NCBI GenBank assembly: GCA_030704615.1
Contig: CM060734.1
Span: 11,718,001-11,782,000, forward strand
From: Takakia lepidozioides
Taxonomy: Eukaryota > Plantae > Bryophyta
Direction: 5' to 3'
DNA: 64,000 bases
The translations under genes were made by a program, and so were the position numbers. The notes beneath the pieces were generated by a model that saw only the letters and a program-made list of their open reading frames with translations, ran no database searches and was not told the origin of the DNA. This document shows positions 33,201-64,000 of this stretch, piece after piece (position 1 is the first letter of the stretch; the number at the start of each line of letters is the position of its first letter).

Positions 33201-34406
33201 CCAACCTGTTCGGCGGATATGGAAAAGAGTTCGGTCAACAACTCGAACTCGTTAAGTGCCTCAGTTGCTACTGAGTGCACCATCACTTCTTGGCCGTGAT
33301 TTTCCCCGAACAGCCAAGTGATGCAGTCCGTATTGGACTCACATTCGTACAATCCCGGACCTAAGGATTTAACCGCATTCTCTAGTCCTACCTTCCTCCG
33401 CTTTACCTCCCTGCAAGGTGCGGAAACTGTTGCCAGTACTCGATGAGCCTGTGGCTTCGGAAAAAACTCATCATCCGACCACAAATCTTCTTCACTCAAG
33501 TCTGCAGACTCTTCCTCCGAGCCGATCGCATTGAGCTCATCCTCATCCGTCTCGTTGAGAGGTGCTCCAGTCATAAATGCAACAGTAGTGGTGTAAGGCC
33601 TTACCCCATAGGTGATAGTGCCTGCCCTCCAGTCCGTACGTGCTCGGGACTGGACCAACCATGGCCTTCCTAGTAGGAGGGCGTAAGAGTACTCATCAAT
33701 GGGAAAGTCAATGATCTGGAAGTCCACCGCATACGTGTACCCTCCAGTCTTCATTTTGACATTCGCAATGTGGCCCATGGGCCTGATCTTCCGCTGGTCA
33801 GCTAATCGTATAGTCAGCGGAGATTCATCTGTCACGCTTAATCCCAACTTTGATAAAGTGGACAGAGGCATGATGTTTACCGAACTTCCGTCATCCACCA
33901 GACAGCGTCGTATGAAACAGTCGACAATCTCTACTTCGATCTTGACTAGGCCTGGGTCAACCCGAGCATTGATGTGATGGGCCTGAACGGAACTGGCAAC
34001 TTGCTTCCTCACCAATGAAGCTTTGAGAGCGTGTCGAATGGTGGGAGCCATCGCTATGAGTTGAGCAAATGTCATGTTCGCCTGAATGTGCCGCAAATCC
34101 TCCATCAAATTGTATGGCTGTAACTCGTCGGTGAACCGCATCGTGGAGTGGATTCTTCATTTTGGCAGCTTCTCTGGTGCTGCCGGACGATTTGCTGAAC
34201 TTTTGGGTCTAGAGGTGAGAGGCAGAGTGGGGACGGGACGTACCACTGGAGGTTCCGTCTCTGCGAATGCCACTTCCTTCTCCTTCGGACGGACGACGTC
34301 TTCCTCTTGAAGCACCTTTTCCGCCACCATCCTCCCATCGGACTTCATCATTGTGAAGTTCAAATCCTCCTGCTCTGAGGCAGAAGTGGTGGACTCCGAC
34401 GCCGCA
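30227..34406 (-). mobile_element. Ty3/Gypsy pol (protease, RT, RNase H, integrase), non-chromovirus-like, decayed
   Basis: Protease LVDDGSSVNIM; RT WVSPMVIVRKKNGGLRVCVDFR...IFLDDF; RNase H FHVYVDAS; integrase HDSMCGGH...CDAC, KWGIDYVG, SDRGSHF, QTSGQVERAN and WMGPY. Domain order PR-RT-RH-INT. Contains stops and frameshifts. Confidence 0.95.
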
Positions 34407-35839
34407 CACTACAAGGAATCGCCGAAATAACCACTCAAAAAATGACTAGAAACCCAGTCGTTTCAGTCAAAAAATGACTGGGCGACTACGAGTCCGAAAG
34501 GACAAGACCTATCGGACAGTCCGGTCGTTCCGGTCATTACGTGGTTAGAGTCGTTCCAGTCAGTCATGACGCCGACTGGGGGGTAATTTTTAAGGTGTGG
34601 CCACGTGGCGTCGTCGCGTGCAACGTTGACTGAATCTTGGACCTTGACCACAATGGACTTTTGACCGGGGGGTGTGACTTCCCCACGGTCTGCACGCCGG
34701 GCATACAGCCGTGTGGCTGTGTGTCGGTACTCGACGTGTTTTTTGCCGAAACATTCCGGATATGGCCACGTGCAGGCCGGAGGCCACACCACGTGGCGCG
34801 ATGAGTTGTATGCTGGTTGCCTTTACAACTTGCAAGTAGAGTCGACAACTAGAGTGTTAAGTGACAGATGCAACTGGAGGTTTGAAATGCACTACTTCGC
34901 TAGTGATATACATTGACTGTGGGTTGGATACCAGGCACTCCTAGTGGTTGCAGTGACTTGGGGGCTGCGACTTGTGGTTCATACATGTGCAATACTATTT
35001 CTACTGTCTCCAAATAGCAACACAGATGCTACAATGGCCCCACTATAGCATTGCAACCAATACAATCCCTTGCACACTGCCACTGATCATCCCATTGCGG
35101 ATGTGATTGAGACTGGAGAACATATAGGCCATCCATCAAAGCACGAAAAGAAATAAACATGATGAAGAGCACGTGACATTGTATTAAGACAATACCTCAA
35201 AACCATCCCATACAATGCACAAACTCATGAGTCCGTAACGACCATGATTAGACTTTAAAAAAAACTATCATATATGGTTCTCCTGCACCTAACTTGCTAA
35301 TATTCTCCTAACACCTAACTTGATATTCTCCAGATTATGCATAATTCAGCCCCAGCTTGCATGATGTCTTCACCTCTTTTCTAGGCTGGCACAAGCTGCA
35401 TTCAAAAGGCATATGACAAAAACCTGTTCAGAATCACCCTTTCGGTATTTGCTAATAGACCTCAACATACTTCTGCATACACCCACAGCGAGTATATCAG
35501 TGATCATTTTACTCCGAAACCACATCTGTTTATGCATACTGCAGGTCCATTGATGAGCATGTGTTATGCACGCTCCGACATCTGGCATGCATGTTTATTG
35601 TTAAAGATGATACCCCCTTCCAAAGCTTCTCTTCATCTCTCTTATTTGTTTTTGAGTACTTTCTTGCTGCCACATAGGCAGTAACTTGCCCAGTCACTCC
35701 AAACCACCATAGATCCACCCAACGAGCTAACTTACAAAATTCAATATGCAAATTCCCTCACCACAAATGTGTTGAAGAGGATACCTTCATTACAGTGCCT
35801 TGTTCTATTAATTGTGCTGCTGCCGTTGCTATTTCCAGT

Positions 35840-36022
35840 TCACTTCCTACCCCCATTGTCCCACCATTGACTCGGGTCAGAAAAGTGTTCATTCCAAAGC
35901 TTCTCTTCATCTCTCTTATCTATTTTCGGGTACTTTCCTGCTGCCACATCGGCAGTAACTTGCAAAGTCACTCCAAACCCTCTCCAAACCACCACACATC
36001 CATCCAACAAGCTAACTTTCAT
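35840..36022 (-). pseudogene. Fragment resembling the N-terminal half of the OSB (organellar ssDNA-binding) PDF motif
   Basis: DEEKLWNEHFSDPSQWWDN. The homologue at 19340-19420 (minus) reads EKLWDEYFSDPSQWWDNRGKKVNA, and degenerate copies lie at about 46452-46535 and 50838-50915 (plus). Matches the LW..FF.NP..WWDNR..K pattern, but the PDF tripeptide itself is absent. Confidence 0.65.
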
Positions 36023-37100
36023 AATTCAATATGCAAATTCAAGGCTAAGCTTGTAGATGAAAGGGCAAAACAGGTTGAAACAAATCAAAGAATAAGGTGC
36101 CCTCACCATAAACCAATACCACAGATTCACCCTACGAGCTAACTTACAGAATTCAATATGCCTATTCAGGGCTGAGCCTGATGAGAGGTCAGCCTAGGTC
36201 AAAGAAGAAGGTGCCCTCACCACAAACCACCACATATCCACCCTACGAGCTAACTTGCAGAATTCAATATGCAAATTCAGGGCTGAGCCTGATGAGAGGG
36301 CAAAACAGGCTGAAATAGGTTGAAGAATGAGGTGTCCTCACACAAACCACCACACACCCACCCTACGAGCTAACTTACATAATTCAATATGCAAATTCAG
36401 GGCTGAGCCTACAGATGAGAGGGCAAAACAAGCTGAAACAAGTCAAAGAAGAAGGTGCCCTCACCACAAACCAGTACCACAAATCCACCCTACGAGCTAA
36501 CTTACAGAATTCAATATGTAAATTCAGGGCTGAGCCTGATGAGAGGGCAAAACAGGCTGAAAAGAGGGCAAAACTACCGGCTCAAACGGTCAAAGAAGAA
36601 GGTGCCCTCACCACAAACCACCACAGATCCACCCTACGAGCTAACTTACTGAACTCAATATGCAAATTAAGGGCTAAGCCTGATGAGAGGGCAAAACAGG
36701 CTGAAACAAGTCGAAGAAGAAGGTGCCCTCACCACAAACCAGTACCACAGATCCACCCTACGAGCTAACTTACATAATTCAGTATGCAAATTCAGGGCTG
36801 AGCCTGATGAGAGGGCAAAACAGGCTGAAAAGAGGGCAAAACTACAGGCTCAAACAGGTCGAAGAAGAAGGTGCCCTCACCACAAACCACCACAGATCCA
36901 CCCTACGAGCTAACTTACTGAACTCAATATGCAAATTCAGGGCTGAGCCTGATGAGAGGGCAAAACAGGCTGAAATAGGTCGAAGAAGGAGGTGCCCTCA
37001 CCACAAACCAGCACACATCCACCCTACGAGCTAACTTACAGAATTCAATATGCAAATTCAGGGCTGAGCCCGATGAGAGGGCAAAGGCTGAAAAGAGGGC
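35985..37100. repeat. Tandem array of nine 111-145-bp units inside CACTA element 2
   Basis: The anchor GAGCTAACTT occurs at about 36009, 36136, 36247, 36367, 36494, 36638, 36762, 36907 and 37028. A partial unit lies at about 35720, with inverted single units at about 46270-46390 and 50670-50760. Confidence 0.95.
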
Positions 37101-37930
37101 ATATCCTGCATGGATTAACATGGCGTTACAAGACACCACATCTCCTTCAGTCATATTGTCGAACACTCCCTTTGCATCCTCGATGCACCCACAATTGGCA
37201 TACATGTCCACGAGGGTGTTGTTCAGAACAATATCTGGTTCAATTCCCGCTTTGATGATGTCACCATGGACCTCTCTGCGCTTTTCCAGGGCTGCTAGGC
37301 TTGCACACGCATTGCAGACACAAATAAATGTGATGTGATTGGGCTTCACCCATTCCCACCATTTTCTCATAGGTCTCTAAAGCCTCCATCCCGCACCAAT
37401 GTTGTGTATATCCTGCAGCCATTGTGCTCCAAGACACCAAATTTCATTCAGCCATTAGGTCGAACACTCCCTTTGCATCCTCAATGCACCCACATTTAGC
37501 ATATATGTCCACCAGGGTACTATTCAGAATGATATCTGGTAAAATTCCAGCTTTGACAATGTCCCCATGGACTTCCTTGCCCTTATCCAGCGCTGCCAGG
37601 CTCGCACACACCTTGCAAACCTAACTTGGGGTGATCTGGTCGGGCTTCACCTCTTCCCTCATCATTTGCTCATAGGTCTCCAAAGCCTCCATCTCGCGCC
37701 CCTGCTGTGTATAATCTGTGATCATCGCAGTTCAAGACACCACATCTTGTTCGGCCATATTGTCCAACACTCCCTTTGCATCCTTGATGCTCCCACATTT
37801 TGCATACATGTTCATCAGAGCAGTGTTCAGAACAACATCTGGTACGATTCTAGTTTCGACAATGTCAGCATGGACCTCTTTGCCCTTTTCCAGGGCTGCC
37901 AGGATCACACACGCATTGCAAACACAGTAG
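37095..37930 (-). pseudogene. PLS-type PPR gene fragments (about three P-L-S triplets) inside CACTA element 2
   Basis: [78 protein letters not shown] plus two related units, with stops and frameshifts. Confidence 0.92.
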
Positions 37931-40539: not shown

Positions 40540-43500
40540 GAGGTTAGCTATTTCATGAGCATGAGTGGCATGAGCGGCATGAGCGGAGTAGTAAGACAAT
40601 CGGTTTTCATGAGCAGAAGTACAAATTTTGGAAATAAAAAATATTAAAAAATATAATTTTAATGGAATGTGTCATAACAATAATAATATAATATTCATTG
40701 TTTGAAGCTGAAATTGAAGTTTTGGGAGCCGTGCTCATGATATTTCGTCTTGTGCTCATGGAAATTCCGAGCGACATCTGTAAAAATGGCGCCGAATTTC
40801 GCAGTAATAGGTTCCACAACCGAAAAAAATTGCGACGTATTTCGCGGTAATAGGTGCCTCCGGCGAAAAATGGTGCCGAATTTCGCGGCTATAGGTCCCA
40901 ACATGTCAAGTGTGTTAGCCAAAAATTTGGAAATGTGGCGCCGAATTTCGGGAGATGATGCCGAGGATTGCACAGATGTTGGGCAGTTCTGGGCCATGTG
41001 TCTGGAAATTCGGCGCCATTTTTCCAGACATCGTTCCCGTACATGTTGGGACTTGGCCAGTTTTTGGCCCAAAATAGGGAAAGTCGGCACCATATTTCCA
41101 GAATGGCCCCCACAACTGCTACTATTGGAACTCAGTTTTCTGGAAGATCTGCAAATTTATCCTGCCGCCATCTTATTATGGATTATGTTTCGACATTGAA
41201 CTACCACTGGACGTCAACGGCTATCCAGAATGTATTTGAAAGAGATTACTTTAATATTGCAGGTCTCATTCCAGGAGTTTTGGGGTGGATTTCATTAATT
41301 GCAAAACATACTCTAATGCATAAATTTTTTTTTGAAAATATCCATATGGTGGATTCCCTTTGTCCCATTAATGATTTCCGAAATCCCTGCTGAGGAGTTT
41401 GTGCAGCTCGTTCACGCTCAACGCTGGTGCATGAACAAAGTCATCAATACTCAAGTTCATCCTCAACCTCTTCAGGTAAATGTAATACAGATGCTTGCAC
41501 GGATAATACTTTGTCCCCTTCTTTGCTTCCATCAACGAGAAGTCCGTACAATTGCAGGTCGGCTCCACTCCGATTGTAACTCTGAATAATGCAAGCCATC
41601 CCAAGAGCATTGGCAATCCGAGTCTCATTCAACTTGTTGGGAGGGTGTCGTCTCTTCACTCTTCCGAATCGCATTGTGGGATGTGCAGAATTGCCCAATC
41701 CGTCTCTACTGGACTTCGTAGTCTGCAATGGCTGGGTCTGAGGAACTGGAAATGGGTGGGCAGGGACGTCTGTGCGTTGCACCATTCGAAATCCTGCTGC
41801 AGAAAGAGCATCCGCCTCATTCTGAAAGAGGTTGCAACCCGGTGCAACAGGCCAGACGCCCAGAGGCTCAGGCATTCCCTGAATCCCGTACTTGGGCTTG
41901 CCAAATACACAAGTCATTAAGTCGTGCCTACAGAACCAAAACGTCTGTGTTGTGGCGTGAGAAAATCTAGGAGTAAAAAATCTGTCGCTGAGACAAGGTG
42001 CAGGTACAGCACCGTGTGGGTTCCTCCGAATCATCTCACCGCAGCGTGCTCTCGTGTCCACCCGGATGGCGCAGCACTTTCCTCGAAAGGCCGACAATAT
42101 CCTTGCAATTCTCCACTGTGACTCCGACACTCTTGTCTCCACAATGGGTATGTTGTATTGCGTTACTACAGATGGCTCGTTATGTTCCTCGGGCACATGC
42201 CCTGTGCTCAAAGGAGATGACGTTCTTGAACGTGCAGGGCTTGCGGTGCTGACGAGACTTCCTCGGGCAACATTATGGGACCACGAGGGAGCGTGCGAAT
42301 ATTATTGTCAACTCGCCATGAATCCTCTTCTCCGTCAGGTGCCTCGTCAAGTCTTCGTCTCACTGGACGGGTGTGAACATCTCCTTCCAAGTGTTGGCCT
42401 CTTCGAAGCAATTGCGTGTCTCGAAGGCCCTCTCGCAAGGCTGCCGCCCGCTTCCGAGGATTCTTCGATCTGGAGGCAGTCCGCATCAGCATTTCCTGCC
42501 TGTCCGGCCCCAAGCCCCACTGTTTCCCTTTCAAGAACTCGTTGTACCTGCATTGTTGCATAATTGACCTCACAATGTCCTCCGTTGTGGCAGTGAGGAT
42601 GTCCACCAGATGCGCCGCAGAGGAGGCACACCAGGAAGAGTGTACTGATTCGGCCATGTTTGTTGTCGGCATGTCGGTATCGGAGTTCAGACACATTTTC
42701 TGCACATGCACATTCTCAGGTTACAAGCAAGTTACAAATAATGACTAGTATAATATTGAACGGGACATGAATTCGTCCAACTCACCTCCCGCATATAGTC
42801 GCCAAACTGGAGGAAACGATATTGCCACCATGTTAGCCAAACTGACCATTGCTCCCTCGTCTGATTTCTTTACAACACCTGATGTTGTCCACCAAGCCCG
42901 TATACATGCAAACTGTGTCTCTGCATCATCCAAGGTGGGAGCACGATTCCACACAAGACACATGGAACGGTGCTCCTCTCTGAATTCTGGCGCCACGAGC
43001 CTGGTTGTGTACTGCGACAAGCTCTACAGAAAATGGAACCCACAAGATCTCTCCTTGCCTTCCATTGGAACATTGGGGTCTTCCCCGTACACCCTTTGGA
43101 TAGCAGCCCAATTTGCTTGTGCGTTGTCCGCCATAAAACCACGGAAATTCGGCGGGGGCAACCCCGCCCTGGCCATCTGTTTGTTTATTCCCTGCCAAAG
43201 AAGCATCTCCGATTGTGTGTCCTCCCTTTTCATCTCACAAATAACAATTGTCATTAGCATCCTATAGTGGGGGTCGTAGACATGTGCACCCATTGTCACC
43301 CACTGGTGATTTGTAATTCGCTTGATATGGTCGAACATGACCCAACTGTTTGACAAGTCCCCACTCGTCATCCGGTGGACCAGATCCACGCCGCTTCCAG
43401 GCCCACACGTTGACATTTTGAATATGAAACAACGATCTGCCTCAGTCCTTTGTCCTTGAAACCTACTTCCATGAATGTAGTCATATCCATATCGCCGCTT

Positions 43501-44923
43501 CACCTCCAGAATAGAGTGCATATCCGAGCCTCGCCCAATTCTTTGTTTGCAGGAGACAATGTGGTTTCGGATATTCGGTGAACAGACGTGGGACACTAAC
43601 TCTAGCAAGGCCTCCATTTCCTTCTCATCGAGAGGGACTTTGTCGGAGCCATCTTCCGACATAATTCTGCCCAATGCCATCTTATGGGCGGCCTGTAGCT
43701 GTATCTGTTTGGGTTTGGCATCAGGTCTTAACTTAACCTCCTCCTGAATGAGCTGCTCTGCCTCCTGGGCAGCCTCCCACGAGTTCCCCCTCGCCAATTT
43801 GTGACAATGCACACCAACGTGTATGCAAGCTCGTGTGAGGTCAGGGAAACGGTGCAACACATAGGACTGCTTGGCATTACAAACAGACATGCAATGTGGT
43901 GGTTCTTTGCAATGCGCACACTTAAATGTGGAGTTTGGAACCTTTTCCTGAGCTCGAAATGGTTGATGAGCTGTGCCTGTCCAATCCGTCTCGTTCCTGT
44001 GACCTCTGGATTTAAAGTGGAAGCAAGTTGGGGAGAAACACCGCAGCGCGCCCGCACACACAACGTAGCGCACCCGCACACCATCGAGCATCTTCATGCT
44101 GGTGGTTCTGGTGATGCACCAAGGATGACCGTCATGTTTCCTATCCATATCTGTCAACATTCCGGACGCCCTCGAATAGTCCGTTCGAGGAGGGAACTCA
44201 AAAAAGATATTGTCGTCGACGTCTGCGGGAAGACATGTCACGGATTTAATTGCAAACTTGTTGTAGTCCAGCCTAGCCAGTTCGGAGCGGTGTCCCTCCG
44301 TCTGAAGCCCTCGCAGAATATCAAGAATGGATTGAGTTGCTGAGCTCGTGCTGGGAATATGACTCCCTCGTCCGCTGATGTCCATTGAGGACTTGCCTGA
44401 TCTCCATGATGATCTTGGAACTTCCATGACCTCGTCGGAGTTAGACAGGTTGTGAACAACCCGGTTCTCGCTCATCTTCATTGATGGGATCGGCTCTAGA
44501 TTAAGTTCGTTGCGGATTTCTCTCTTTGAGGTACCAACTCTCTGATTCGCGGATTGTTTCATGGAAGGCGGCAGGATAGAAGGCGCATTTGGCGGGCAAA
44601 TGAAGTCCCCAACAGCCTGTATATGACGCTGTTCGATGGTGGAACTCGCCATTCCCTGCCGTCGCCAAAATCGTCGTGGAGCACAACAATACTTTCGACT
44701 ACAACTCCATTTGAATCCTTCCTTTCCTCCTCCAGGCATACTGACCCTGGTTTCAGGTGGTATCGGACGCAGAGATATTTCTCCATCACCCGACAGATCC
44801 CCCCTCTGCACGGAAATGTAGCTCTATGCTTGTGAGGAGGGCAGTACAATATAACGCTTGAGTTTTCTGCCATGAGAGATGTGCACACAAGATTGTGAGC
44901 ATGGCGTTCGGGCAAGCGCCCTG
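40540..44923 (-). mobile_element. Mutator-like (MULE) element, 3' part: transposase pseudogene with GCM-like zinc domain, DDE core and SWIM finger
   Basis: DDE-type motifs VMFDHIKR, FMADNAQANWAAI, CGFH and TTNMAESVH; SWIM finger CNCTDF...PCKHLYY. An 86-nt GT-AG intron at 42785-42700 joins YMRE|KMCLN. Subterminal AAAATGGCGCCGAATTTC repeats at 40780-41100. A few stops and frameshifts. Confidence 0.85.
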
Positions 44924-46854
44924 CACTACAACAAATTGCGGCTTTCATGACTGCCATGGGTGCGCAATCATGGCCGATTTGTGGCAGAAATGCCATTTGC
45001 AGTCGTAAAATGCCTTTGAAGTCATAACGCAGGTCTGGGGAAGGTGTATATGCGACTGCATGATTCCGGACTCTGCTCAACACAGGTCAAACATGTTTGA
45101 CCATAAATATTGGCATGGCGGATATGACTACCAGTCACGGTCATGGCTACACTGGAATGACGTGTGCATATTGCTAGACAGACATATGACTTCATGACTC
45201 TCACTCTAATGCATTCTGCCAGATCATCACATGGATGAAACACTACATGACTGCATGTGTCGACACATGCTTTTCTGGTTATATATATAATATATGAGTA
45301 TTTATATTATGAAAAAATGGAAACTCTGACCACTAGAATAAAAAACAAAAAAAAACAAAGTGCAAAAGATTTAAAAAAAGCACATCCGCTGGTAAGTGCA
45401 CACTGTGTGGCCTTGGTGGTTCGGGGTTCAAACCCGCGCCCTGACCCCGTGTGTGGGATTGTTCGTGACGGTATGTCCGGGCGTTGATCGTCATGTAGGT
45501 CTCATGGCCCATAAATGAAAGGGGGTTAATTTTTCCCCCTTCTCAAGGACCTGAGGTTTCTTTTTAATTTAATTTTTTTTAAAAAAAAATTGCTTATAGG
45601 GTTTGCAAAAAGGTTAAAAAACTTAAAAAATTGCCCATCACGGTAGCCGTGAACAGACTTAGAGCAAGCGAGCGGGAGGGAGAGAGAGAGGGCTGGGACT
45701 TAGAGCGAGCGGGAGGGAGGGAAAACATGCATAGGAGGCCTGCAGTTGGAGCAACCTTCGCATTTGAAGCAAGCAACCCTAGAAACGCTAGGGTATGTGT
45801 GCGAGGAGGTTTCGGCTGGGAGCTCGCCGTTCTTAGGAGAGTCTGCTTGGTCTTAGCAGGCCGTGTTTCAATCTCTACCCGCTCAGCTGCACCGTGGTGG
45901 TTCTCACAGACCAATCCGACATTACCTGACTACAGACACAAGCAGCACACACAAGAGACAACCACAATCGCAAGGTGTGGCTTTTTCTTAATGTACGATG
46001 TGAAGAAGTTTGTCCATCCTGCAAATGTGGGCCCTCCTGTTAGTACCATGATTTGGTATTCTTCCTGATGCTTGCAAGGTTCTTGGGAGAGTCAGCTTGG
46101 TCTTAGCAGGCCGTATTTCAATCTCTGCTCGCTCAGCTGCACCGTGGTGGTTCTCACTGACCAATCCGACATTACCTGACTATAGACACAAGCAGCACAC
46201 ACAAGAGGTACTCTTGGGTTCATGGTCAGTCAAATCCTCCATGGGTCATGACACAAGGTCGAGGACAATGTGGTGAGGGCACCTTTTTCTTCAGCCTATT
46301 TCAGCCTATTTTGCCCTCTCATCAGACTCAGCTCTGAATTTGCATATTGAAGTCTGTAAGTTAGCTCGTTGGGTGGATCTGTGGCGGTTTGGAGTGACTT
46401 TGATGTTACTGCCAATGTAGCAGCAGGAAAGTATCCAAAAACACATAACTGAGATGAGGAGAAGCTTTGGAATGAACACTTTTGGGACCCAGTCAATGGT
46501 AGGACAAAACTTTTAAACAAAAAGGTGAATGCCTGTTGGACTATAGAGAGAAGCAGATGCAATTCAGAATTCTGCAAGTTAGCTGGTTGAGTGAACCTTT
46601 ATGTGTAAGGTTTAGCTTCTCCTTTCTCAAGCAAGGTTTGGCCAACAAATGTGGATGCAGGATCAATGTCATGAAAGAATGTTAGTGTGTATGTAGTCTT
46701 AGCTAGCAAGTGCCATAAGTTCTGCTGGTCTTATGCTCTGGAGTGTGTTGTGAAGTCTTAGTTTGCACTGGCTTGCGGAGATCTATTGCAAGGTACCATG
46801 GTACAGCAAACGGTCATTTGGAGTTGTTTGGAAATAAACGCATCTGTGTGGCAG

Positions 46855-48380: not shown

Positions 48381-51300
48381 CAGAGGCTTAGTTGTGCTTG
48401 TGCGTTTACCACCCCCCAATGGGGGTGTGGTGATGTGCGCTTCACATTTATGTTTTCTGACCTAGCCTTTGTAGCAACTCCGCCCTTTGTTTTGATTACC
48501 TTTCAATCCGGGTATGAAGTTTTCACACCATTTTGTGAAGTATTGCAGCAACGGTGTGGCCCAACCATTTTCTGAGCCAGTTCTTTGATAAATTATTAAG
48601 TCCTCTCTATACTGACTGTTTTGCAGATCGTGCTATTCTGTCATGGCAGTGAGCTCGTGGTATGTTCCCCTATAGGTCTGAATCATTCCTATCTGGTTCT
48701 TATTACTTGCTGACAGTTTACAGCTTTTATTTATTTTTCCATGTTTGGGTAAGGCAATAACCTCTCTCGCTGTCGTTTGCGTGTAGGTAGTTGGTATGCC
48801 AGGTGGTGTGTGACCAGTGGGAAGTAGTGTGCCTGGCATCTGGGTAAGAGGGTTTTTGACACATTGCATTATTGGGGCCAGATGTTGGGTGTCTAAGATT
48901 CATCGTGTGGCAGGTATGTTTTACTTTGATTTGGGCAGTGGGCTGTAGGTGTGGTAGCTTGTATGATACTGTTCATGGGGCCGAGTGGAGTGCTCCCCAT
49001 GACTTGATTTTTAGTGGAGTACAGATTATCTATGCCTACGTATTTATTATTGGTTTGTGATTGGAAGGGTCTAGATCATTGGGTGTTGATGAGTGTAGAG
49101 TTGTTTATGGCAATTCTGGCCTGCCCCCTCCCCTTCAACCACTCCACATTTTTGGTTTTGTGGTGATTGATTTTTAGCTCTGATATACTATGCTGATTGT
49201 TTGGGTTATAGCCCTGCAGCTTCTTTGGCTTCTTCTGATTAGGTCTGTTTCAAACAGTCTCGCGGGGGCCACTCCTTAACAGTTTGGTAGACACGCACGA
49301 TAAAGGGTATTTTCCTAGGGGGTATTAATTTAATTATTTGGTTTTGTCTCCACCTTATAATTATATAATTTTCTAATATACAACATTTTTTAGTAGGTTA
49401 TTTTTTTAATATTCAGCAGCAACCATGAATATTTGATATGCTATATTAATATAAAAATAAATAAAATAAAATGTTACAAAGCAAAAACTTGTGTTTTACA
49501 TTCCCATGCAAACTTGCATTTTACATTTCATTACTTACTCATCTAGAGTATCACTATGATCGACATCAGCAAGGGTATATACATTCTGACCTCTATCGTA
49601 AGTCAGAGTTACTGAGCTAATAATTGAATCAATATCTATCCATTTACTATCGGTGACATCGTACTTGAACTTCAGATGCCGTCTAGACTTAGAGAAGTAA
49701 TTTAATAGTACCATGATATTGGTAGATGGTTTGTTGAAGAGATCTATTGGCTAACGGGAGATCCCCCATTAGTGCCCACCTAAGTAATCAAATAGCTTAA
49801 CCCTAGCTTTGCCCACACTTTGCAGTGTAAGTAGGATCATTCTATGGTCAATGAACAATCAGCTAATTAACTACAAAGGGGTTTTTGCCCCTTTCTTTTC
49901 ACACTACACATCCATACATTGCTTGACACGTGTCATCCAAAAATACCTTCACCCTATGAGTAATTCTAAATAAAATGTAATTGGAGCCTTTAACCTCTAC
50001 CCTATATTTAGATAAATGCTCCCGCCTATATTTCTCATACCCTATATTACTTTGAAAAATGTTCTAATTTTTACTTGTAGAGAATAAATGACACCCTATA
50101 TTTTTTTTTGCACGTTAGGTGGTCATTTTTAGAAGTGGACCCCCCAAGCAAACAGTGCATTAAGTAGTGTGGTTTTCCTGCATTTGGTGTCTACAGGTTG
50201 AGGGGTGTCCCTTACTTTCTTTTTTTTGGGTGAACAACCTGTTGGGTTAGGATTTTGATGAATTTTGTAGGGGCTGTTATTCCATAGATGTATGCAGGTG
50301 TTGCCTCTTCGCTGAGTACATCTTGGTAATTGGGGAGAGGGGATGGTGCAAGAATTTTTTTGGAACAATATAATTGATTATTCTTTCATATGTTCCTTCG
50401 ACATTACCTATTCGGGCCTTGGAGGTGGTAGTTGCAAGTATCCTGGCTCGGTGCGTTTCATGTTCTGGCGTGGGGGCATGGTGGGAGGGGCCCCACAGTG
50501 GCGAGTTTTTTAATGGTTAGTATGTGACTGGGCTGCTTGGGTGGCTTCAATCTTGGGGGCAGCTGGGCTGCGAGCCTGTTATGACTGCTCTTGTGTCCAT
50601 TGGGGTCTAGGTATGTGGATTAGGTACTGAATGCTAGCATGCACGGTAGGCTCAGCTAATGAAGGCACCTTCTTCAATACATTTCATCCTGTTTTTCCCT
50701 CTTATCAGTATCGGCCCTACATTTTCATGTTGAATTCTGCAAGTTAGCTGGTTGAGTGAACCTTTGATAGTTTGGAGTGGCTCAGACATGATACTGCCAA
50801 TGTGACAACATGAAAGTATCCAGAAATAGGTAACAGAGACGAGGAGAAGCTGTGGAATGAATACTTTTCTGACCCCAGTCAAGGGACAATCGAGGCAAAA
50901 AGGTGAATGCCTGTTGGATTACAGAGAATAGCAGACGCAATTCAGCATAGGAACTAGTGTGATAAACTGAGTTTGGTGTTTCCTAGAACAAATCTAGGTT
51001 GTCATTGTCAGATGCTAGCAGCAAGGCAAGGATGAATGCATGATTTGTCCAATGGCATGGATAGCTGAAGGAGTAGGGATAGAGTGTGGGTCCAGAGAGT
51101 AGCAAATGCAATTGAGCATAGGAACTAGTGTGACAAGTTGAGTTGGGTGTTTCCTAGAACAAATCTAGGCTGTCATTGTTAGTTGCTAGCAGCAAGGCAA
51201 GGATGTATGCATGATTTTTGCAGAGGCATGGATAGCTGAAGGAGCAGGGGTAGAGTGTGGGCACAGATTCATCCAAGAGGGCCAGATTTCCAAGCACAAG

Positions 51301-53960: not shown

Positions 53961-54565
53961 CTCCGCTGCCAATACACGGGTTTAGTTGAGCTTCTCACAG
54001 ATCCTAAGAGATGATAGCATTCAAACACCATAACAACGACTCTATGTGAGCACGTCTCTCTCTCTCTCTCTCTTCTGCATCGCCTGGAACAACCTTCCTA
54101 GCGGTACTTTCATCAAACATACTCTAAATCGCGATCGGTAGAGTAAACAGGGACGAAGCCCGTTGACTCGGGGCAGCAACGGGATTCATCCATCCAAAAT
54201 TGACCCTGGGATCGCTATTTAACCCTCCAGGATTAGCAAACTCGCCCTTATAAATAATCGGGGTTGGTCATGCATGCGGTTAGGGACCCGACAAAGCATG
54301 GGGCCCTTCGCCCACATGCAACGCATTATTGCCACGGCCAGCGCCCCCTACCCCCATATCCTGGAACCCGGCCTGCCCGGGTTTTTACGTGTTTAACTAT
54401 TTACTCAACCCAAATAATGTCCACATTAGGAAATTCTCGAAAACAAAGTAAAACTAGCCACGTCTAATAATAAAGTCCACCTGCCACGTGGAAAGGCCTC
54501 CGACATATATGACTCTGGGTCACGTTCGGCCACGTGTCTGGGTACCTAAACCCGCCCGCCCTACA
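53961..54565 (-). mobile_element. Putative 5' LTR plus primer-binding site of a minus-strand LTR element
   Basis: The minus strand starts TGTAGGGCGG at 54565, has a TATA-like TTAAATAG and a (GA)n tract, and is followed by TGGCAGCGGAG (PBS-like, 53971-53961). No second copy. Confidence 0.4.
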
Positions 54566-55004
54566 CTAGTTAACTACCCACACCTACTAACTATCCAGCT
54601 GATGAGTACCTTAACTAAACATTGAGTTAGATACTAACTAGTGGTGAGGGGGTGGTCCTGGGCTCAAATCCGTAGAGCCGATTATCGTACCGTTGAATTA
54701 AGAGGCAAGAGAGCCGTTTGTTGTGGGCAGTGCAACGGACACAGAGAGAAAGGAAGGGTAAAGCGTGCGAGAGTTTGAAATGGCGTCATGTGGGCTTCAC
54801 ATGGAGTGTCAGGAGCGAGGACGACGAAGTGATATCGGTAGAGCATTTCCAGCGTTGTTTTGGGTGATTCAAGGCTAGGCTAGACGGAGCTTTAGTGAGG
54901 TGAGAGAAGCATGAATCATGATGACAGTAATGGGCGAGGCAAAGTAATGGTGGGAGGCAGACATGACAGTTTACAGACCAGCTGTTCCAGTTCGCTGGTC
55001 TCCT

Positions 55005-55362
55005 CATAAATACTGGAGAACTGACTCCACCAGGGCTGTCTAAATCTCTTCGTCTTGTGCTTTGAGCTCTGACTGCACGCAGTCCTCCATCTCTACGTTG
55101 TGTCCTTGATGACTCTGGACAGCTTTTCACAATAGTTCATAGTTCAACCTCTTTTGGATTACCTCCGTCGTTGGAGTAACTGCTCCTCTCCCCCCTCTCT
55201 CTCTCCCTCTCTTGTAGGAGTACTCTCGCTCTCTCGTGAGCTTCCCTCTGCCCTTCCCGTGGACGTTACAGCGCATGATGTCGTTTATGCTCAAAGGCGC
55301 ACTTTAAGTATCTTTTCTCGTGGCGAGTGTCGCTGCGTAGCCATGCTGGGCAAGTCGTGAGA
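55005..55362 (+). promoter_or_regulatory. Putative TATA-like box, CT-rich leader and two short uORFs of the RGF-like gene
   Basis: CATAAATA at 55005-55012; (CT)-rich tract at 55185-55215; uORFs MMSFMLKGAL* (55275-55307) and MLGKS* (55343-55360). Confidence 0.4.
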
Positions 55363-56883
55363 ATGGTCACTACAGGAAATAAGCATATAGGATGCAAAAT
55401 TGTAAAATCGACCACAGTCTTCTGGTGCACCATCACAGCCCTCATGCTGTTGTCTTTCACTTCTGCCAGCCAGCTCCGCACCTCTGGTAAGCCTGTTTGT
55501 GGTGCACTTTTGTCTGTGCCTCTCTCTCGTCTCTCTGTCATTGGGCATCCCTCTCTGGAGAAGTGAAATCTGTTGCACGAAGGTCAGGCAACCAGTGATG
55601 GTGATCTCAAGCAAACGTACATAGACAGCACTTGAAATTCAGGAGATTCCATACGTGGTCCGCGTTGAGATTCTCGTAACATCTCTGTTTTAGGACTCCC
55701 GATGTACCTCATAACCTCCTTCAAATTATTCATATGCGCATTTTCCTTAGGGAATTGTTGGGGAACGGGAAACACTGCCCTAGAGCCCTTGGAGTGCATC
55801 CACGGCTACATGTGGATTGTTTGTTCCAGTATATGATTTGTGTTCGTACATTAGATGAATTATGCATCCTGTGGCAGCTCATGCATTCGATCCAGGCGCT
55901 GAGCATGTGAACGTCATTGAGCAATCTATGTCCCGATGTCTCTGTCTCTTTGCAGCAAGCCCAGTCGTACAGTGTTGGTTCATTTGGCTGCTTTTCTTCC
56001 ACATGTACTGTGCAGGTGGAGAGATTGTTCTCGGCACTCTCATCGACCCTGATGCTGCAGCAATCAAGGAAGTGCTACTGCCTACACTGCAGGCAGTTTT
56101 CTCCCCTGTAAAAACAAAGGTACTTAATAGTGTGCTTTATTCGCCATAGAGAGGATTCAAATCAGGTTCGCTAGATTTTACAGACGTTGGTCCATATCAA
56201 TCTGCCACTTCACTCTAAGACCGTTGATTTGGTTTGCAACTCCAACGCAATGATGAAAACGCTTTCCATTTCACCATCTGGGGGTCATGAAGGACATTAA
56301 ATTTGACGTCAAGAATTTATAGGAGTTGCTCGCGCCACTTCACAGCGGTTGTTTCGCTTCGTGTCAGTAACCGAGCCTAAATTCCCCGGCCCTACAGATC
56401 TTTTGTATGGTGATGTTTCTTGTTTTTTGGTCATCCTTAGTTTCAGAAATGGATCACCCGAACAAGGTTTACCTCGTTGCCTTCTCACATATACGCTTCC
56501 TGATTTGACCTTGGCAGATGCTTAGAGGAAAATTGGCACCATACAGTGCGACACAGCTGCGGCTTAGTATAGCATCGGAGGAGTCTACTCTAAAACCAGG
56601 CCACGTCAATAGAAAGCTTCTGCAAGGGCGTACTCGTATCCGCCGCAGTGTTCATCCATACTGGCGGAGAGTGGGTAGCAGATCCGCCAGTTCTTTGCAG
56701 TCTTTGGTCAGGGTCTTGAAGGGAATGATGGTGGGTAGTGGCAAGACCGAATGTTGCGGTAACAGACCAAGGGCCAGACGTAAACTGCCAGAGAAGAATG
56801 TTTCCGATACTCAGGCTCAGGATTTTGAAGACGACATGATTGACTACAGAGACCCGGAAACACACCCTCCAAGAGGTAATTAG
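55363..56883 (+). CDS. RGF/GOLVEN/CLEL-family sulfated peptide precursor, 3 exons, 197 aa
   Basis: Exons 55363-55486, 56016-56119 and 56518-56883, with GT-AG introns of phase 1 and 0 and 594 nt with no internal stop. Signal-peptide-like MVTTGNKHIGCKIVKSTTVFWCTITALMLLSFTSA, RKLL and RRKL motifs, and a C-terminal 13-mer DYRDPETHPPRGN* (56842-56880) comparable to Arabidopsis RGF1 DYSNPGHHPPRHN. Confidence 0.88.
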
Positions 56884-57899
56884 AGTCCGGAAGCATCTGT
56901 TTGGTTCATGCCGGACCTGGTGTATTATCTCGCATGTGTCACACGGTGGTTGGATTGCGCACAAGATGGACTATTGGGACTGCAGCTACTTTGCTGGAAA
57001 ATGAATAGTGCTTATGCACAAAATCATGGGTGCCTATCGATCGGCCGAACCTTGATTGTCATGCCAAACATTTGAGGTAGTTTCCAGAGCCAAAGAAGAG
57101 CGAAGTGTACACATGCAGTAATAAGGGCTTTATCGGTATGAGCTTGGATTACTAACATATGTAGTTCTGGATACGGTAGTCTAAAAAGCAGGGGGCGAGT
57201 TGGGACAAATGCCTTGGGTAGGTACCTAATGATACAATGATACAACTAGTTTTAAAGTTACACACAATGTCGCATGTACGAACTTAGCTACTGTTACCGA
57301 TATCTCGATTATGTGGGGAAAGGACTTCGAATCACATTTCAGAAGAACATCATGATGGTCCTGTACAATATCAGCTTTATCTATAAAATGCAAGAAGGAA
57401 GGATCTTGAAACTCGTACAGTTGAGAGTTCTCGACAATGTTCATGCAAGTGCTCTCAAAAAAAAGTTTGCACTTGAAACTATGACTCGCCTGAGCTACAG
57501 TGAACCCTCTCTAAACCCTCTCTAAATGTTACCTCCATATATGTTATCTCCTTTATATATCCTCTGGGGGCGGTGGGACCCTTCTAAGAAGGGTGGGACA
57601 CATGTCAGATCCTAATCAGGCCTACTCCCACTATTTGACACCTATACCTTGACTACCCAAATTGGCGTGAACCACCCTCGATTTAATAGGCATCACCTTC
57701 CTGCCGACTTTTTTTGACCTAACATTTCATTCCTTAATCCACTTGGCCTTATTAGATTAGCCCCCGTTATTAATTCCTGGACCACTCTAGAATCAACCGG
57801 GCCCACCCAAACTTGGGGGGCTTATTTCCTACTAGTTGTTATATTAATTAATATTAATGGCTTGGTCCCTTCGTTTCTCTTTGGGGTGCTCCTGGCGCC

Positions 57900-60800
57900 T
57901 TTCCATCCGCAGCTCACTCCGGAGGTCCGTGACTCTCTGTGGTCCGTTTGCTTCGTTCATTCCCATTCTTTCGTTCTCTCCCCGGCTCTTTAGCTCCTAG
58001 ACAGATTCTCTTTGCTCCAATCCTGCTTTTATCCTCTCGATCCTGTCCTCTCGGCAATTTGCCAGACTCTCTCCCTCTATTTCCTCTCAGATGGGTCCCT
58101 ACCCGAACAAAGGCCTCAAGGGCACCACTCAAGGGCGCAGACAACATATATATTCGCCTCCCTGTTTCACGCAAAGCGCAGCCCTCCTCTGGCACAGAGG
58201 CTTCTTCATGACGCATCAAGCGCAGACCAGAATTCCTGACCAGGTGGATCTCGCGCATCTCCGCCCTGGTCCCTCCTCCAGAGTCCAAACCAACCCCGGC
58301 TAATTTTGCAGCCTCTCAACGAGCCTGCTTTCAGTTCACATGGAAGCCCCCAAGGTGACCCCGAGCTGCAGGCAGAACGTACTGAGGATCCCTCAGATCT
58401 TCAACTTGCCATGAGCAAATCTGACCCGCTCATTAATGTCGACTTTGACTTCATCGACAACAATGTCACAGATTTTCAAGGGAGAGGGGTCCTCCTTCAC
58501 TTCCCGGGGAAAAAAGTTGACAGAGTTTTTGTTAGAGATTGGGCCATTCGGCATCTGGGGTGGTTTGGGGGATCTCGACCAGCAATTTTGCCATTCCAGG
58601 GGTACAGGATTCTATTCCATTCTTCTGGACACAAAGGAGGCGGCGGACAAAGCACTATCTTTTAACCCACACCTTCAGGGATTCAATATCAATATTTTTC
58701 CATGGTCGGCGGCGATGGGAAATCGTAATGGCAAGGTATGGGCCCCTCGGATAATTGCCCTTCCATAAATCCTTGATCAATACCTTTTTAGCCTCCCGGA
58801 TATAGGCAACCACTTTGGGGTTTTCCTGGGGTGCCTCTCTGTTTTTTTACCCAGAAATGTGCACAAGGGCACTCAAACAGGAACCAACTTGGAGGGGGGC
58901 CACCATTGCATCAAGGGTCAATGACACAGGTTTTGCAAAAATTGTGGTTAATATGCCGGCAGAAGCAATTCTGCCAGGGTTCATCCGTTTGCCCATTGAC
59001 AGGGAGGGCAACTATTTCTCAGTCAAAATCACGGAAGATACTTCCTCCACAACATGCTACACCTGTGCGCAAACTTGGCACCTGAGGGTGAACTGCCCAA
59101 AAGCGAAGCGGAAGAGGCCCTCTACGAATGGTTCCTACAGTTCTCAGATAGATGCCCCCCTTCACAACAACAGCATTGGGCAGGGCCAAATTGATCCTAA
59201 TCCTAACCAGAAAATCCCCGATGCTACAATCAACTCCCAGAATCATGGTCAAGGGAAATGGGACTGCCTCCTGCAACAATCATCTTCCTCCCCAGCAGTG
59301 AAGAAACGCAAGGAACACATGGACCCGATGATGGTAGAGGCTGCTCCAACGACATCACTGCCAGGCCCCCCTACGGCTGGCCCAGCCAATCGTATGCTGA
59401 TCAGATACCCATTGGTGCACTCCTCCAGGCCACCGGCTCATCATCAAACAACAGACCTCAATCCAAGGAAAGGTGGATCAAACATTGCCATTAACCCAGT
59501 TATAGCAAGGAACTGCGCAAGGAACTGCGCAAGGCTCCGATCCTTCCCAAGCTTGGTGTTAAGGGGATGCTCACAGCTGCAAACTGTGGCAGATCCCAAA
59601 GCCACTTGTATCACTGGGTGAAAGCATGGTAGGGTCGGCCCAAAATGGAAGTCCCAGACAGTTTATTTTTGCATTTTGTATATATAGGACTCAATGAAGA
59701 TGTTAAGTTGGAATTTTTTATGGGTTATGAAGCAAAATCTAGACCATTGTTGACGTTTCGAACATAATGAAATTTGAATCAGACAAATCTGACAAGATTT
59801 GAAAATCCATATAAGTCCATGAGTGCATGAAGCTTGTGCGGTCTCAACGGGTGATATGCCCTTCATGGACTCACTGGGAAATGAATCCAACATCCATTGT
59901 AGATGGAAAATTTAACCACCTTCATTGATCTCCCTTGTTATATGAAAATCTGGTTCAAAGGTCAAAATTTCCTCCCCTACAAGTTTTAGACGTAATTAAA
60001 TATTTATAAATTTCGTGAATTAGCACATCGATTTTGGACATGCAATCTTCATTATTTTTTATATCTCCTTTCACAATAAGATGGATTGAAAGCTTATGGA
60101 GAGAAATATGCCTACAAAATTTAGAATCGAACCCACCTATGAAGACTTGCAAATTTTCAATCTATGAATTGATGTCAATAAAGGGTGAGATTGATAAATA
60201 AACCTAGGGAGGTAGCATGATATCATATGTATGTAGTCTTCAAGGTTTCACAAATAGGTTTGTCTAAACATACATTGTCCATGAAAGTGGAGTCGAGGAC
60301 TCCCAGATTCTGCTAGTTTTGGGTGGACCCTATCCTGCATTGACCCCACTCCACTCATCTTCCGAAAATCAGCATCGGGGCCACTGCTCCAAAGGGGATT
60401 AGCCTGGAGTCCCATTGGATTACTTCAGATGACGTGCAATACTACATGGCCACCTGCCCTATTGACAGCGATCCAATTCCTACTCTAAAAGAAAAAATCC
60501 AAACGATTCTTCACAAATACTCAACTAATTACTTGTTGCAGGCCCACACCATCATCACTTGGGGGGCTTACGTCGAGCAATATCCCTGGCTAATCTCCTC
60601 TCTCACCCCCTCCACTCAGATATTGGCACTTATCAAAGAAAAAGACCTGCTTGGCAACTTCCCTGAAGGCAAAGGTCTCTGGATTCATCTGATCAACCCC
60701 TACAGTCAAGTTGGCGACTATCCGGGCAAGAGACACTATCCACTCTGCCTTCACTCTTCTTCACGCAGTTTTGGAGGCAGAGGTGCACGAACAGAATGAA

Positions 60801-62690
60801 GAGATTGAACTCCAAAGGCTCAGGGAGGTTCATCAGCCCTCATACAACCCAATTGGCCCCGACCCATCTCCCTCCTCATCAGATCAGCAGGAGCATCACC
60901 CTCAAGCTTTCCAGCGCCAGTCACAGTCGCAATCGCCCCCCCCCCCCCCCCCCCCGCTCACAATGCTTGCCGCCTGAGGAGCTTTCTCACTCAGCGGGCT
61001 CCAACGCTGCCCTCGCCTACCCCTATCCCTGTCCAGGTCATCCCCAATCAAGTAAGCCTCAACCACCTCCCTGTCCCCTTCTTGATTTTCTCACCTTCCT
61101 CTAGATGCCAAAATGTTTGCAGAAACCTGTGCCTCAAATCAGCTGTTAAATCTAAAAGTAAGGTCCTGCCTTCTATTGCTTTCCCTGCCAACCTCCAAAC
61201 GTTCTCTTTGACTGTGGATTCCGGGCCCCTCCCTCCTATCACCCTCGCTCCGACCTTTTCACCAATCTCTTGGGATCCATCACTAAGATACACTTGGACC
61301 TTCTCTCCTCGGCCCGTTTCCACCCCATCCCCCTAGTCCCTTCGGCCCCTACGACCCCCTTAACCCAGGTGTTATTCATCGAAATTAGGGGCCCAGTCCC
61401 CAAGGCCCCTCTTGACCACTACTGGATCTCCTCCCCTATCCCTTATGGCAAGCGCACAAAATTCCTTTTCTGTTCCAACAGGCCATCATTTGAGAAATCC
61501 CCTCTCAGCCTGTCCCTCCCCGAAATTGAGGTTAGCATCCACTCGTGGAACATGAGAGGGATTGGCTCTGACCAGGCATGCCTTAAAAAAATTAAACTTC
61601 GCACCTGGTTGGCACCACTCCAACAATCAAAGACCATTGTGTTCCTTCAAGAACATAAACTCTGCCAAAATAAAATTGATAACCTTTCTGACCAGCTGTG
61701 GCCCCTCGTCAACGGTTCTCTGGAAACCTTCCCACCTTGGCTCTAGAGGTGGCACTGCCATCCTGCTGGCGCCTTCCCCGGTCCAATTCATCCTCAAAGA
61801 GGAGGTCTAGGAACCAGGAAGGGTCCAGTTTTGCTCTGTAAAGCTTCCGGGGCAGGCAAACCCTACAGGTTTTGTTAACATTTACGCACCCAACACCTAT
61901 GTGGACAGGGCTGACCTTTGGACTCTCATCTGCAATAAAATGACCTCTCAATAGCTCCCTCATTCCTGGGTGTTAGCCGGTGACTTTAACATGGTTGACA
62001 ATGAACAAGATAGATGGGGCTCTACCTCTCCCCATCTCAACCCTGACGAAGAGGTTCCCTGACAGACTCTTCTCCACACTCATAGCCTCGCCGAGATTGA
62101 TTCACCCCCCCCCCCCCCCCCCCAACCCTACTGGGGTTAACCCATTCTTCACATCATGGTCAAACAACCGCTCTCTACTTGATCTCTGCATGGCCCGTTT
62201 AGACAGAATCTACATCTCCCTATCTATTTCTAATGGGGCAAATCTTCACCCTCAGGAACCTATAGCCAATGGTTTTGATCACCCTTGGTCTCCGCCACCC
62301 TCTCCATGCCTGGTGCAAGGAAAAAGAGCAGAGGTATCTATAGGCTCAATTCTTCGCACCTCGGAATCCCTTCCTTCAAGCTGGGTCTGGAGCAGGCCTG
62401 GAAACAAACAGGTAACAACCTCTCTTGCCCTATTCAGAGATTCTCTCTCAAACTCCAGGCAGCCAGTAAAGCCAGCCAAGACATGAATAGAGAGATTGTT
62501 GCTTACCAGAAGAGACGTTTCCTCGCCCTCAAAAAATGCTTAGCTGTTTGCTAGAAGAAGATTGAAACCAGATCATGCGACGAACATACCTTTCATACTT
62601 ACCTGGAAGCCCGTCAAAACCTGGACTCCTTCCAGCTGTTGCAGGAAGAAAAAATGAGAATGCAAGCTGGGGTTAACTGGTCGTCCAACG
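57900..62690 (+). mobile_element. L1-clade LINE, 5' portion (ORF1 with zinc knuckle, APE endonuclease), decayed and cut before RT
   Basis: ORF1 knuckle CYTCAQTWHLRVNC. APE motifs SWNMRGIG, VFLQEHKL, GGTAILL, NIYAPN, WVLAGDFNMV, ARLDRIYIS and FDHP. Frameshifted; an AT-rich block at about 59660-60300 looks foreign. Confidence 0.88.
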
Positions 62691-62694
62691 ACGC

Positions 62695-64000
62695 TACCGC
62701 GTGAGCCTGGCGCGTGAGCGTGTAAGCGTACGCTCACACAACGATGACGTGGCATGAGCCTACACTCACGTAGCTGACGTGGCGCTGATGCTGACATGGC
62801 ATGAGCCTGGTCCAGGTCATGCCACATCACCACAAAGAAGGTGGGCCTATAACCGTGGAGCCTACAACTGTTGATTTCACCACATGAAGGTGAAACAGAT
62901 TAAGGGTTTCGGGCTTTCCTGGAGTTCAACCTTTTGTTAACAGGAGCTTCATTTCCTAGAACTGAAATGAACGTTGTGTTAACACGAGGTTGTTTTTCTG
63001 GAACAGAAATCAACTTTGTGTCAACATAAGGTTGATTTGGAGATGTTCAAATCAACCTTATGTTAACACGATGTTGTTTTCTTAGAACTAAAATCAACCT
63101 TGTGTCGACACGAGGTGGATTTGGAGAACTTCAAGTCAACCTCGTGTTAACACAAGGTTGATTTCCGAGACTGTCTATCTGAAGGAAGCTTGTTGTGTTT
63201 GCAAATGAAAAGAGGAGGACGAACCAATGCGACAAATGCGTTGACCCACACATTGCGAAGATGTTAGAGGACATACACTGAGAGACACTAGACTTGAACA
63301 CTCATTCCATTACAAGTTGTAGTCAAGGAAAACACAGATTTCTTCATGTCAAGTGCATGCTGTCTATGGGCTTGTATCCCGCTGTAGAAGTGTGTTGACT
63401 TCGTTGAAACTCATAGTGGCTTGGTGAATGAAGAAGTCGCGCTTCGGATCACAAACCATCCTTCTCAAGAAGATGAAATAAAGATGTTTGCACGGTATGA
63501 ACTTCCCTCTCTTTCCCAAACTACTAAAATCAGGACAGGTGCAATTGGGAAAATTGAAAACAGTGATGTCGTACGTCCTGTCCTGCAGGGCAGATGCGGA
63601 TGAGATCATGGTGAAGACCCGACCGTACCCTGGATCAGGCACTTCCATTGTTCCCGCAACACGAGCGTGAAGCATTCTCGCGGACTCGATTTTACCGTAG
63701 TGTTCTGCGGTTGGAGGGAATCGTCGAACTAGCTTCCCATTCCGTCTGGTTGGCCACAAGTGAGCGTCACGTGGAGGTACCCGCGAACCGCTTGAACTTG
63801 AAGCACCTCTATGTGCAATGGAATGTCTGGCTAGGGAGAAACCCGCCTCTTCCAACATTGCGATCTCTTGGTGAGTGAGACCTGTACCCATCTTCACAGG
63901 CCACACGGTTGGTGGAGTAGGCTTCCTCACCACGGAGGGCCTCACTGTCCCACGCATACATCTCCCGCAATCGTCAGCACAGAACCAGATTTTGTGGTTC
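62695..64000 (-). mobile_element. Second MULE-SWIM element, 3' end (continues beyond the window)
   Basis: ORF 63364-63957 ends PNCTCPDF...PCKHLYFIF...FIHQATMSFNEVNTLL, homologous to 41368-41628. The terminal region is rich in CRTGAGC motifs, as at 40540-40760. Confidence 0.8.
62923..63164. repeat. Six 32-bp palindromes at an exact 42-bp period (consensus AAATCAACCTTGTGTTAACACAAGGTTGATTT)
   Basis: Units at 62923, 62965, 63007, 63049, 63091 and 63133, separated by 10-bp linkers. Confidence 0.9.

Follow-up and report, generated by a model that had tools for sequence, protein, structure and literature searches.

Introduction

The C-terminal 13-mer of Arabidopsis thaliana RGF1/GLV11/CLEL8 (DYSNPGHHPPRHN) is carried by a pre-propeptide of about 100–200 aa. 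Among bryophytes, Marchantia polymorpha MpRGF/MpRGF1 (Mapoly0060s0001; DYAEPDTHPPESN) is a Group H RGF for which a typical signal peptide and RGF-like activity in Arabidopsis have been reported. Both MpRGF over-expression and synthetic sulfated MpRGF1 gave RGF-like effects in Arabidopsis, and these were reduced in the rgi1,2,3,4 mutant (Furumizu and Sawa, 2021; Front Plant Sci 12:703012, PMC8329595). Functional support for bryophyte RGFs comes from Marchantia only, and the same authors stressed that the mature form of RGF is known from Arabidopsis alone; for moss RGFs, no mature peptide, sulfation, receptor or phenotype has been reported.

In that study the 1KP transcriptomes were searched for RGF-like sequences, with an Asp-Tyr start of the presumptive mature peptide as inclusion criterion and without demanding a signal peptide. 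Of the mosses, only the early-diverging lineages of Takakia, Sphagnum and Andreaea were found to retain RGF; it was lost in Bryophytina and was not found in hornworts. The C-terminal endings were R/K-G/S-N in mosses and S-S-N (or E-S-N) in liverworts. The moss peptides include DYSDPRTHPPRGN and DYRDPENHPPRSN from Sphagnum, DYRQPQMHPPRGN from Andreaea and, from Takakia, DYRDPQTHPPKGN, which belongs to a paralogue of the gene described here (Furumizu and Sawa, 2021).

Here we characterize a locus in 64,000 nucleotides of genomic DNA from Takakia lepidozioides (assembly GCA_030704615.1, contig CM060734.1, positions 11,718,001–11,782,000, forward strand; hereafter the window, numbered from its first letter). 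A previous reading made from the sequence only had proposed that this locus is an intact RGF/GLV/CLEL-type peptide hormone gene of a seed-free plant; the host is indeed a moss.

Results

Gene Structure

The start codon is located at 55363, and exon 1 ends at 55486 with a GT directly after it. Exon 2 is preceded by an AG (56014–56015) and followed by a GT, and exon 3 is preceded by an AG (56516–56517) and closes with GGT AAT TAG (Table 1). When joined, the three exons are in frame and encode 197 aa with the terminus DYRDPETHPPRGN followed by the stop. Exon by exon, the translation comprises 41 aa, one Gly from a codon split as G and GT between the first two exons, 34 aa and 121 aa. A mechanical list of open reading frames showed three unlinked ORFs (55327–55566, 55862–56149 and 56518–56883), so that, as the sequence-only reading had noted, the gene appears there only as unconnected pieces.

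Table 1. Features of the RGF-like gene and its predicted precursor in the window of T. lepidozioides.
Feature	Position	Strand	Evidence
5′ leader	55000–55362 (partial)	+	X1 contig covers 55000–55485 unbroken
Exon 1: start codon, 41 codons and first base of split Gly codon	55363–55486	+	X1 contig
Signal-peptide-like N-terminus, residues 1–35 (putative)	55363–55467	+	Hydropathy and −3/−1 rule, heuristic
Intron 1, 529 nt, GT..AG, phase 1	55487–56015	+	Skipped by X1 contig, retained in L001 and L002
Exon 2, 104 nt: last two bases of Gly codon and 34 codons	56016–56119	+	X1 contig
Intron 2, 398 nt, GT..AG, phase 0	56120–56517	+	Skipped by X1 contig, retained in L001 and L002
Exon 3, coding part: 121 codons and TAG stop	56518–56883	+	Sequence; Logan contigs
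RKLL, residues 108–111, candidate S1P/SBT6.1-type site (RxLx / RxxL)	56611–56622	+	Sequence
RARRKLPE, residues 161–168, containing RRKL (163–166), candidate subtilase site	56770–56793	+	Sequence
RGF domain DYRDPETHPPRGN, residues 185–197, stop directly after	56842–56880	+	Identical to Tale SKQD-2063992 peptide
3′ UTR	56884–57300 (partial)	+	X1 contig

The closest upstream stop in frame with the start codon is at 55276, and no in-frame ATG is present between this stop and 55363. Of the fourteen upstream ATGs found in 54701–55362, none that follows the 55276 stop is in frame. This ATG-rich stretch on the forward strand could represent translational control by a leader laden with uORFs, or it could mean that the transcript contig described below extends into adjacent sequence.

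The pattern DY-x2-P-x2-HPP-x2-N-stop had one match when the window was translated in all six frames and none in 200 block shuffles; a looser pattern had 0.015 matches per block shuffle. A chance ORF was rejected on the basis of these shuffles and of the spliced transcript contig.

Transcript and Genomic Read Evidence

Public reads were compared with a stretch of 2301 bases of the window (55000–57300). A single contig of 1765 nt from a public run of 2021 stored as contigs (X1; its RNA label is a guess) covers 55000–55485, 56015–56117 and 56516–57300 and extends 264 nt upstream of 55000 and 130 nt past 57300. When the cut offsets are applied, it joins exactly 55486/56016 and 56119/56518. The two stretches that it skips are both GT..AG and showed zero depth inside. 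Since this contig lacks both introns, it must be RNA-derived. The mean word depth was 111, in a run that is small. The junctions and the three-exon, 197-aa structure that had been predicted from the letters were thus confirmed base for base by a public transcript contig.

Genomic contigs from Logan runs SRR327433 and SRR327455 (L001 and L002) keep both introns, contain an identical copy of exon 1 and are 99.7–99.9% identical to window positions 54560–60941; the 121-aa product of exon 3 was also called on contigs from both runs. X1 carries a single coding difference, a synonymous C>A change in a Val codon at 56607, and there is no other among four sources. Not a single read over this stretch came from the raw RNA runs X14, X17 and X23, which carry the same species label, and these three runs are therefore no test of expression. 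The locus is a real, spliced and expressed gene with three exons.

Identity with a Published Takakia Sequence

The sequence-only reading had taken the product for a possibly undescribed ligand. The exact C-terminus has, however, been in print for Takakia since 2021: Data_Sheet_1 and Data_Sheet_2 of Furumizu and Sawa (2021) list for T. lepidozioides the 25-aa C-terminus DTQAQDFEDDMIDYRDPETHPPRGN as Tale SKQD-2063992, and exon 3 ends in the same 25 residues. In addition, the first 33 nt of scaffold SKQD-2063992 were shown to match window positions 57158–57126 (minus strand) exactly, where zero matches are expected by chance, and, as judged by eye, more of the scaffold text seems to correspond to the gene's 3′ UTR in reverse complement. 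Judged by these matches, the gene is the one already listed as RGF-like under the name Tale SKQD-2063992. The exact scaffold match also places the window in Takakia and rules out a hornwort or a fern, both of which had been considered as host. What was published is a 3′ fragment in which 25 aa are coding; the window locus adds the whole 197-aa precursor, introns of 529 and 398 nt and flanking sequence. The peptide itself is thus already known, and what is new for this gene is limited to the complete precursor and the arrangement of the exons.

Organization of the Predicted Precursor

The N-terminal region has a long basic n-region of about 17 residues (K7, K12 and K15), followed by the hydrophobic core TVFWCTITALMLLSF, in which Kyte–Doolittle means over 11 residues reach about 2.0–2.1 at residues of about 18–32. 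The hydrophobic N-terminus seen in the sequence-only reading is therefore present by this profile. Residues T33-S34-A35 before Ser36 fit the −3/−1 rule. A similar N-terminal layout is found in published moss precursors (supplement of Furumizu and Sawa, 2021). By these hydropathy and −3/−1 heuristics, the pattern supports secretion of the precursor.

The RKLL and RRKL motifs and the acidic run QDFEDDMI, all of which had been pointed out earlier, were found in the translation. Andreaea rupestris and the Takakia paralogue share the RARRKLPE motif, and Sphagnum has RRKLPE. Cleavage at RKLL may be expected on the model of the processing of Arabidopsis GLV1, reportedly described by Ghorbani et al. 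in 2016.

The terminal 13-mer abuts the stop as had been read, with TAG immediately after it. It starts with D185-Y186, the Asp-Tyr start used to define the presumptive mature peptide, and contains the H8-P9-P10 and terminal Asn of the C-terminal domain of about 13 residues. H8 together with R11-G12-N13 agrees with the definition of moss-type Group H. By its residues, the locus is assigned as encoding an RGF of Group H (His at position 8) that has the R/K-G/S-N ending typical of mosses. Both this domain match and the published listing support the first proposal, that of an intact RGF/GLV/CLEL-type precursor gene.

Comparison with RGFs of Mosses, Marchantia, and Arabidopsis

The comparison of motifs among the moss precursors was made by eye, on the sequences printed in the supplement. 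The Takakia paralogue SKQD-2078083, which is published in full length, belongs to the same length class as the 197-aa precursor and has the same architecture. The two share, in order, an MVTT start, a basic stretch, an FWC hydrophobic core, TSAS, KMLRGK, HP.W, RARRKLPE and DYRDP.THPP.GN, and the KMLRGK motif falls exactly on the joint of exons 2 and 3 in the window gene. The variable region has diverged between the two precursors, and the peptides differ at position 6 (E in the window peptide, Q in the paralogue) and position 11 (R and K, respectively). The Andreaea and Sphagnum precursors share an FWC or IWC core, HPYW.RV and (RA)RRKLPE. RGF ends of the same type are present in Sphagnum, Andreaea and the Takakia paralogue.

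This comparison also bears on the R-D-P-E-T core and RGN end, which the sequence-only reading had considered unusual. As the moss RGF peptides have R/K-G/S-N ends, the residues thought to be unusual are the moss norm; both the R-G-N end and the D-P-x-T/N-HPP core are usual in early-diverging mosses.

Outside the mosses, the residues D, Y, P, H, P, P and N at positions 1, 2, 5, 8, 9, 10 and 13 are the same in Arabidopsis RGF1 and in MpRGF. The window peptide shares with Arabidopsis RGF1 the DY, P5, H8-P9-P10, R11 and N13, whereas at position 12 the Takakia peptide has G and seed plants have H. With MpRGF1 it has D1, Y2, P5, T7, H8, P9, P10 and N13 in common, whereas liverwort RGFs end in S-S-N or E-S-N and the Takakia window peptide ends in R-G-N.

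Pfam and word-based protein searches were made exon by exon. The Pfam scan of the three exon translations found no family. We know of no Pfam model for the RGF short-peptide family, and this blank result was therefore expected. The word-based search with exon 3 gave no match but the ORF itself, on two genomic contigs from Logan. As the relatives in print are transcriptome entries and genes split by exons, this result carries no information on relatives.

Genomic Surroundings

The gene had been described as stranded in transposon debris. The region is indeed transposon-rich, but recognisable transposon genes are at least 6 kb away, and Pfam and repeat searches found no repeat and no recognisable transposon domain within 52–62 kb of the window. 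The description overstates the setting of the gene.

Ty3/gypsy-type remnants are present at 31781–34141 (minus strand), with RT_RNaseH_2 (1.5e-23), an RVT_1 tail and an aspartyl protease ORF in the Pfam search. A 595-aa ORF without a Pfam match at 43024–44811 (minus strand) gave weak ESM Atlas leads (0.82–0.92) to unnamed eukaryotic clusters and to MULE/ZSWIM-type transposases, and it probably encodes a divergent Mutator-like transposase. Near the end of the window, an ORF with a SWIM zinc finger (Pfam, 7.2e-05) was found at 63364–63957 (minus strand).

Tandem arrays with spacings of about 110–360 nt occupy 35618–37923, and inverted copies of these arrays, 78–92% complementary, were found at 46269–46490 and 50670–50846. 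The arrays and their inverted copies could be satellites or terminal arrays of a large element. A separate unit of 171 nt is tandemly duplicated at 50922–51263 (within 50883–51290), and an inverted copy of about 90% complementarity lies 31.5 kb away at 19139–19375. Downstream of the RGF gene, at a distance of 2 kb, there is a 268-aa ORF without a Pfam match (58815–59621, plus strand), which was also called as a 254-aa product on the genomic contig L001.

Discussion

We consider with high confidence that the locus is best explained as the nuclear gene for the RGF/GLV/CLEL-like propeptide catalogued as Tale SKQD-2063992, transcribed into a three-exon mRNA that encodes a 197-aa pre-propeptide. 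Modelled on the family members of Arabidopsis and Marchantia, the N-terminal signal sequence would send the precursor into the secretory pathway, and Tyr186 of the Asp-Tyr motif may be sulfated by TPST. Subtilases would then cut the variable region at RKLL and RRKL, so that the C-terminal 13-mer is freed, probably with a hydroxylated proline. The 13-mer would be expected to bind an LRR receptor kinase of the RGI/RGFR type, in which the RxGG motif would read the sulfated Asp-Tyr.

It could be argued that the gene is a transcribed but functionless relic heading for loss, as in Bryophytina, with a product that is not secreted or whose receptor is gone. The loss of RGF in later-diverging mosses and hornworts, the long leader rich in upstream ATGs, the transposons in the wider neighbourhood and a signal peptide predicted by heuristic only are consistent with such a fate. 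However, the frame is intact across all three exons, the one coding difference among the four sources is synonymous, the mean word depth of a small run is 111, and motifs along the whole precursor are conserved with the paralogue, Andreaea and Sphagnum after very long divergence. We therefore regard a relic as very unlikely.

That the locus encodes a novel RGF-like ligand with an atypical core might be suggested by the fact that neither the Pfam nor the word-based protein search gave a named relative, and by the fact that none of the papers searched mentions Takakia together with RGF in its main text, the listing of the peptide being in a supplement. As this supplement (Furumizu and Sawa, 2021) contains the exact peptide along with its transcript's 3′ end, and as the supposedly unusual residues are the moss consensus, the novelty of the ligand is refuted. 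Membership of another sulfated Asp-Tyr family (CIF/TWS1 or PSY) has a negligible likelihood: CIF and RGF peptides can be hard to separate, as both have a sulfated DY start, are Pro-rich and often end in Asn, but CIFs are longer than the exactly 13 residues from DY to the terminal Asn found here, the H8-P9-P10 core and its spacing fit RGF Group H, and the curators of both families placed the Takakia peptide under RGF (PMC8329595).

As part of the known Takakia RGF gene, the 197-aa precursor, of which 25 aa were published, is together with the exon–intron layout and the genomic setting a modest addition made by the window. It shows that a correct three-exon gene for a small peptide can be recovered from raw sequence alone. 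The full precursor and its layout could help the re-annotation of the Takakia genome, and the precursor could throw light on whether the signal peptides of bryophyte RGFs are genuine. In 2026, a survey of 64 species, among which there were no samples of Takakia, Sphagnum or Andreaea, placed the origin of RGFs with a complete signal peptide in ferns, a claim on which the moss precursors bear.

Takakia has no roots and, to our knowledge, no rhizoids. The developmental role of its RGFs must therefore, for want of roots, differ from that of Arabidopsis RGF1. We tentatively suggest, as a possibility that we hold somewhat short of even, that Takakia, as the moss that diverged earliest, has retained a pair of complete RGF genes with apparent signal peptides, against the fern-origin claim. 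If this is true, the pair, whose peptides differ at positions 6 and 11, could reveal a non-root ancestral role of RGF-RGI signalling in land plants.
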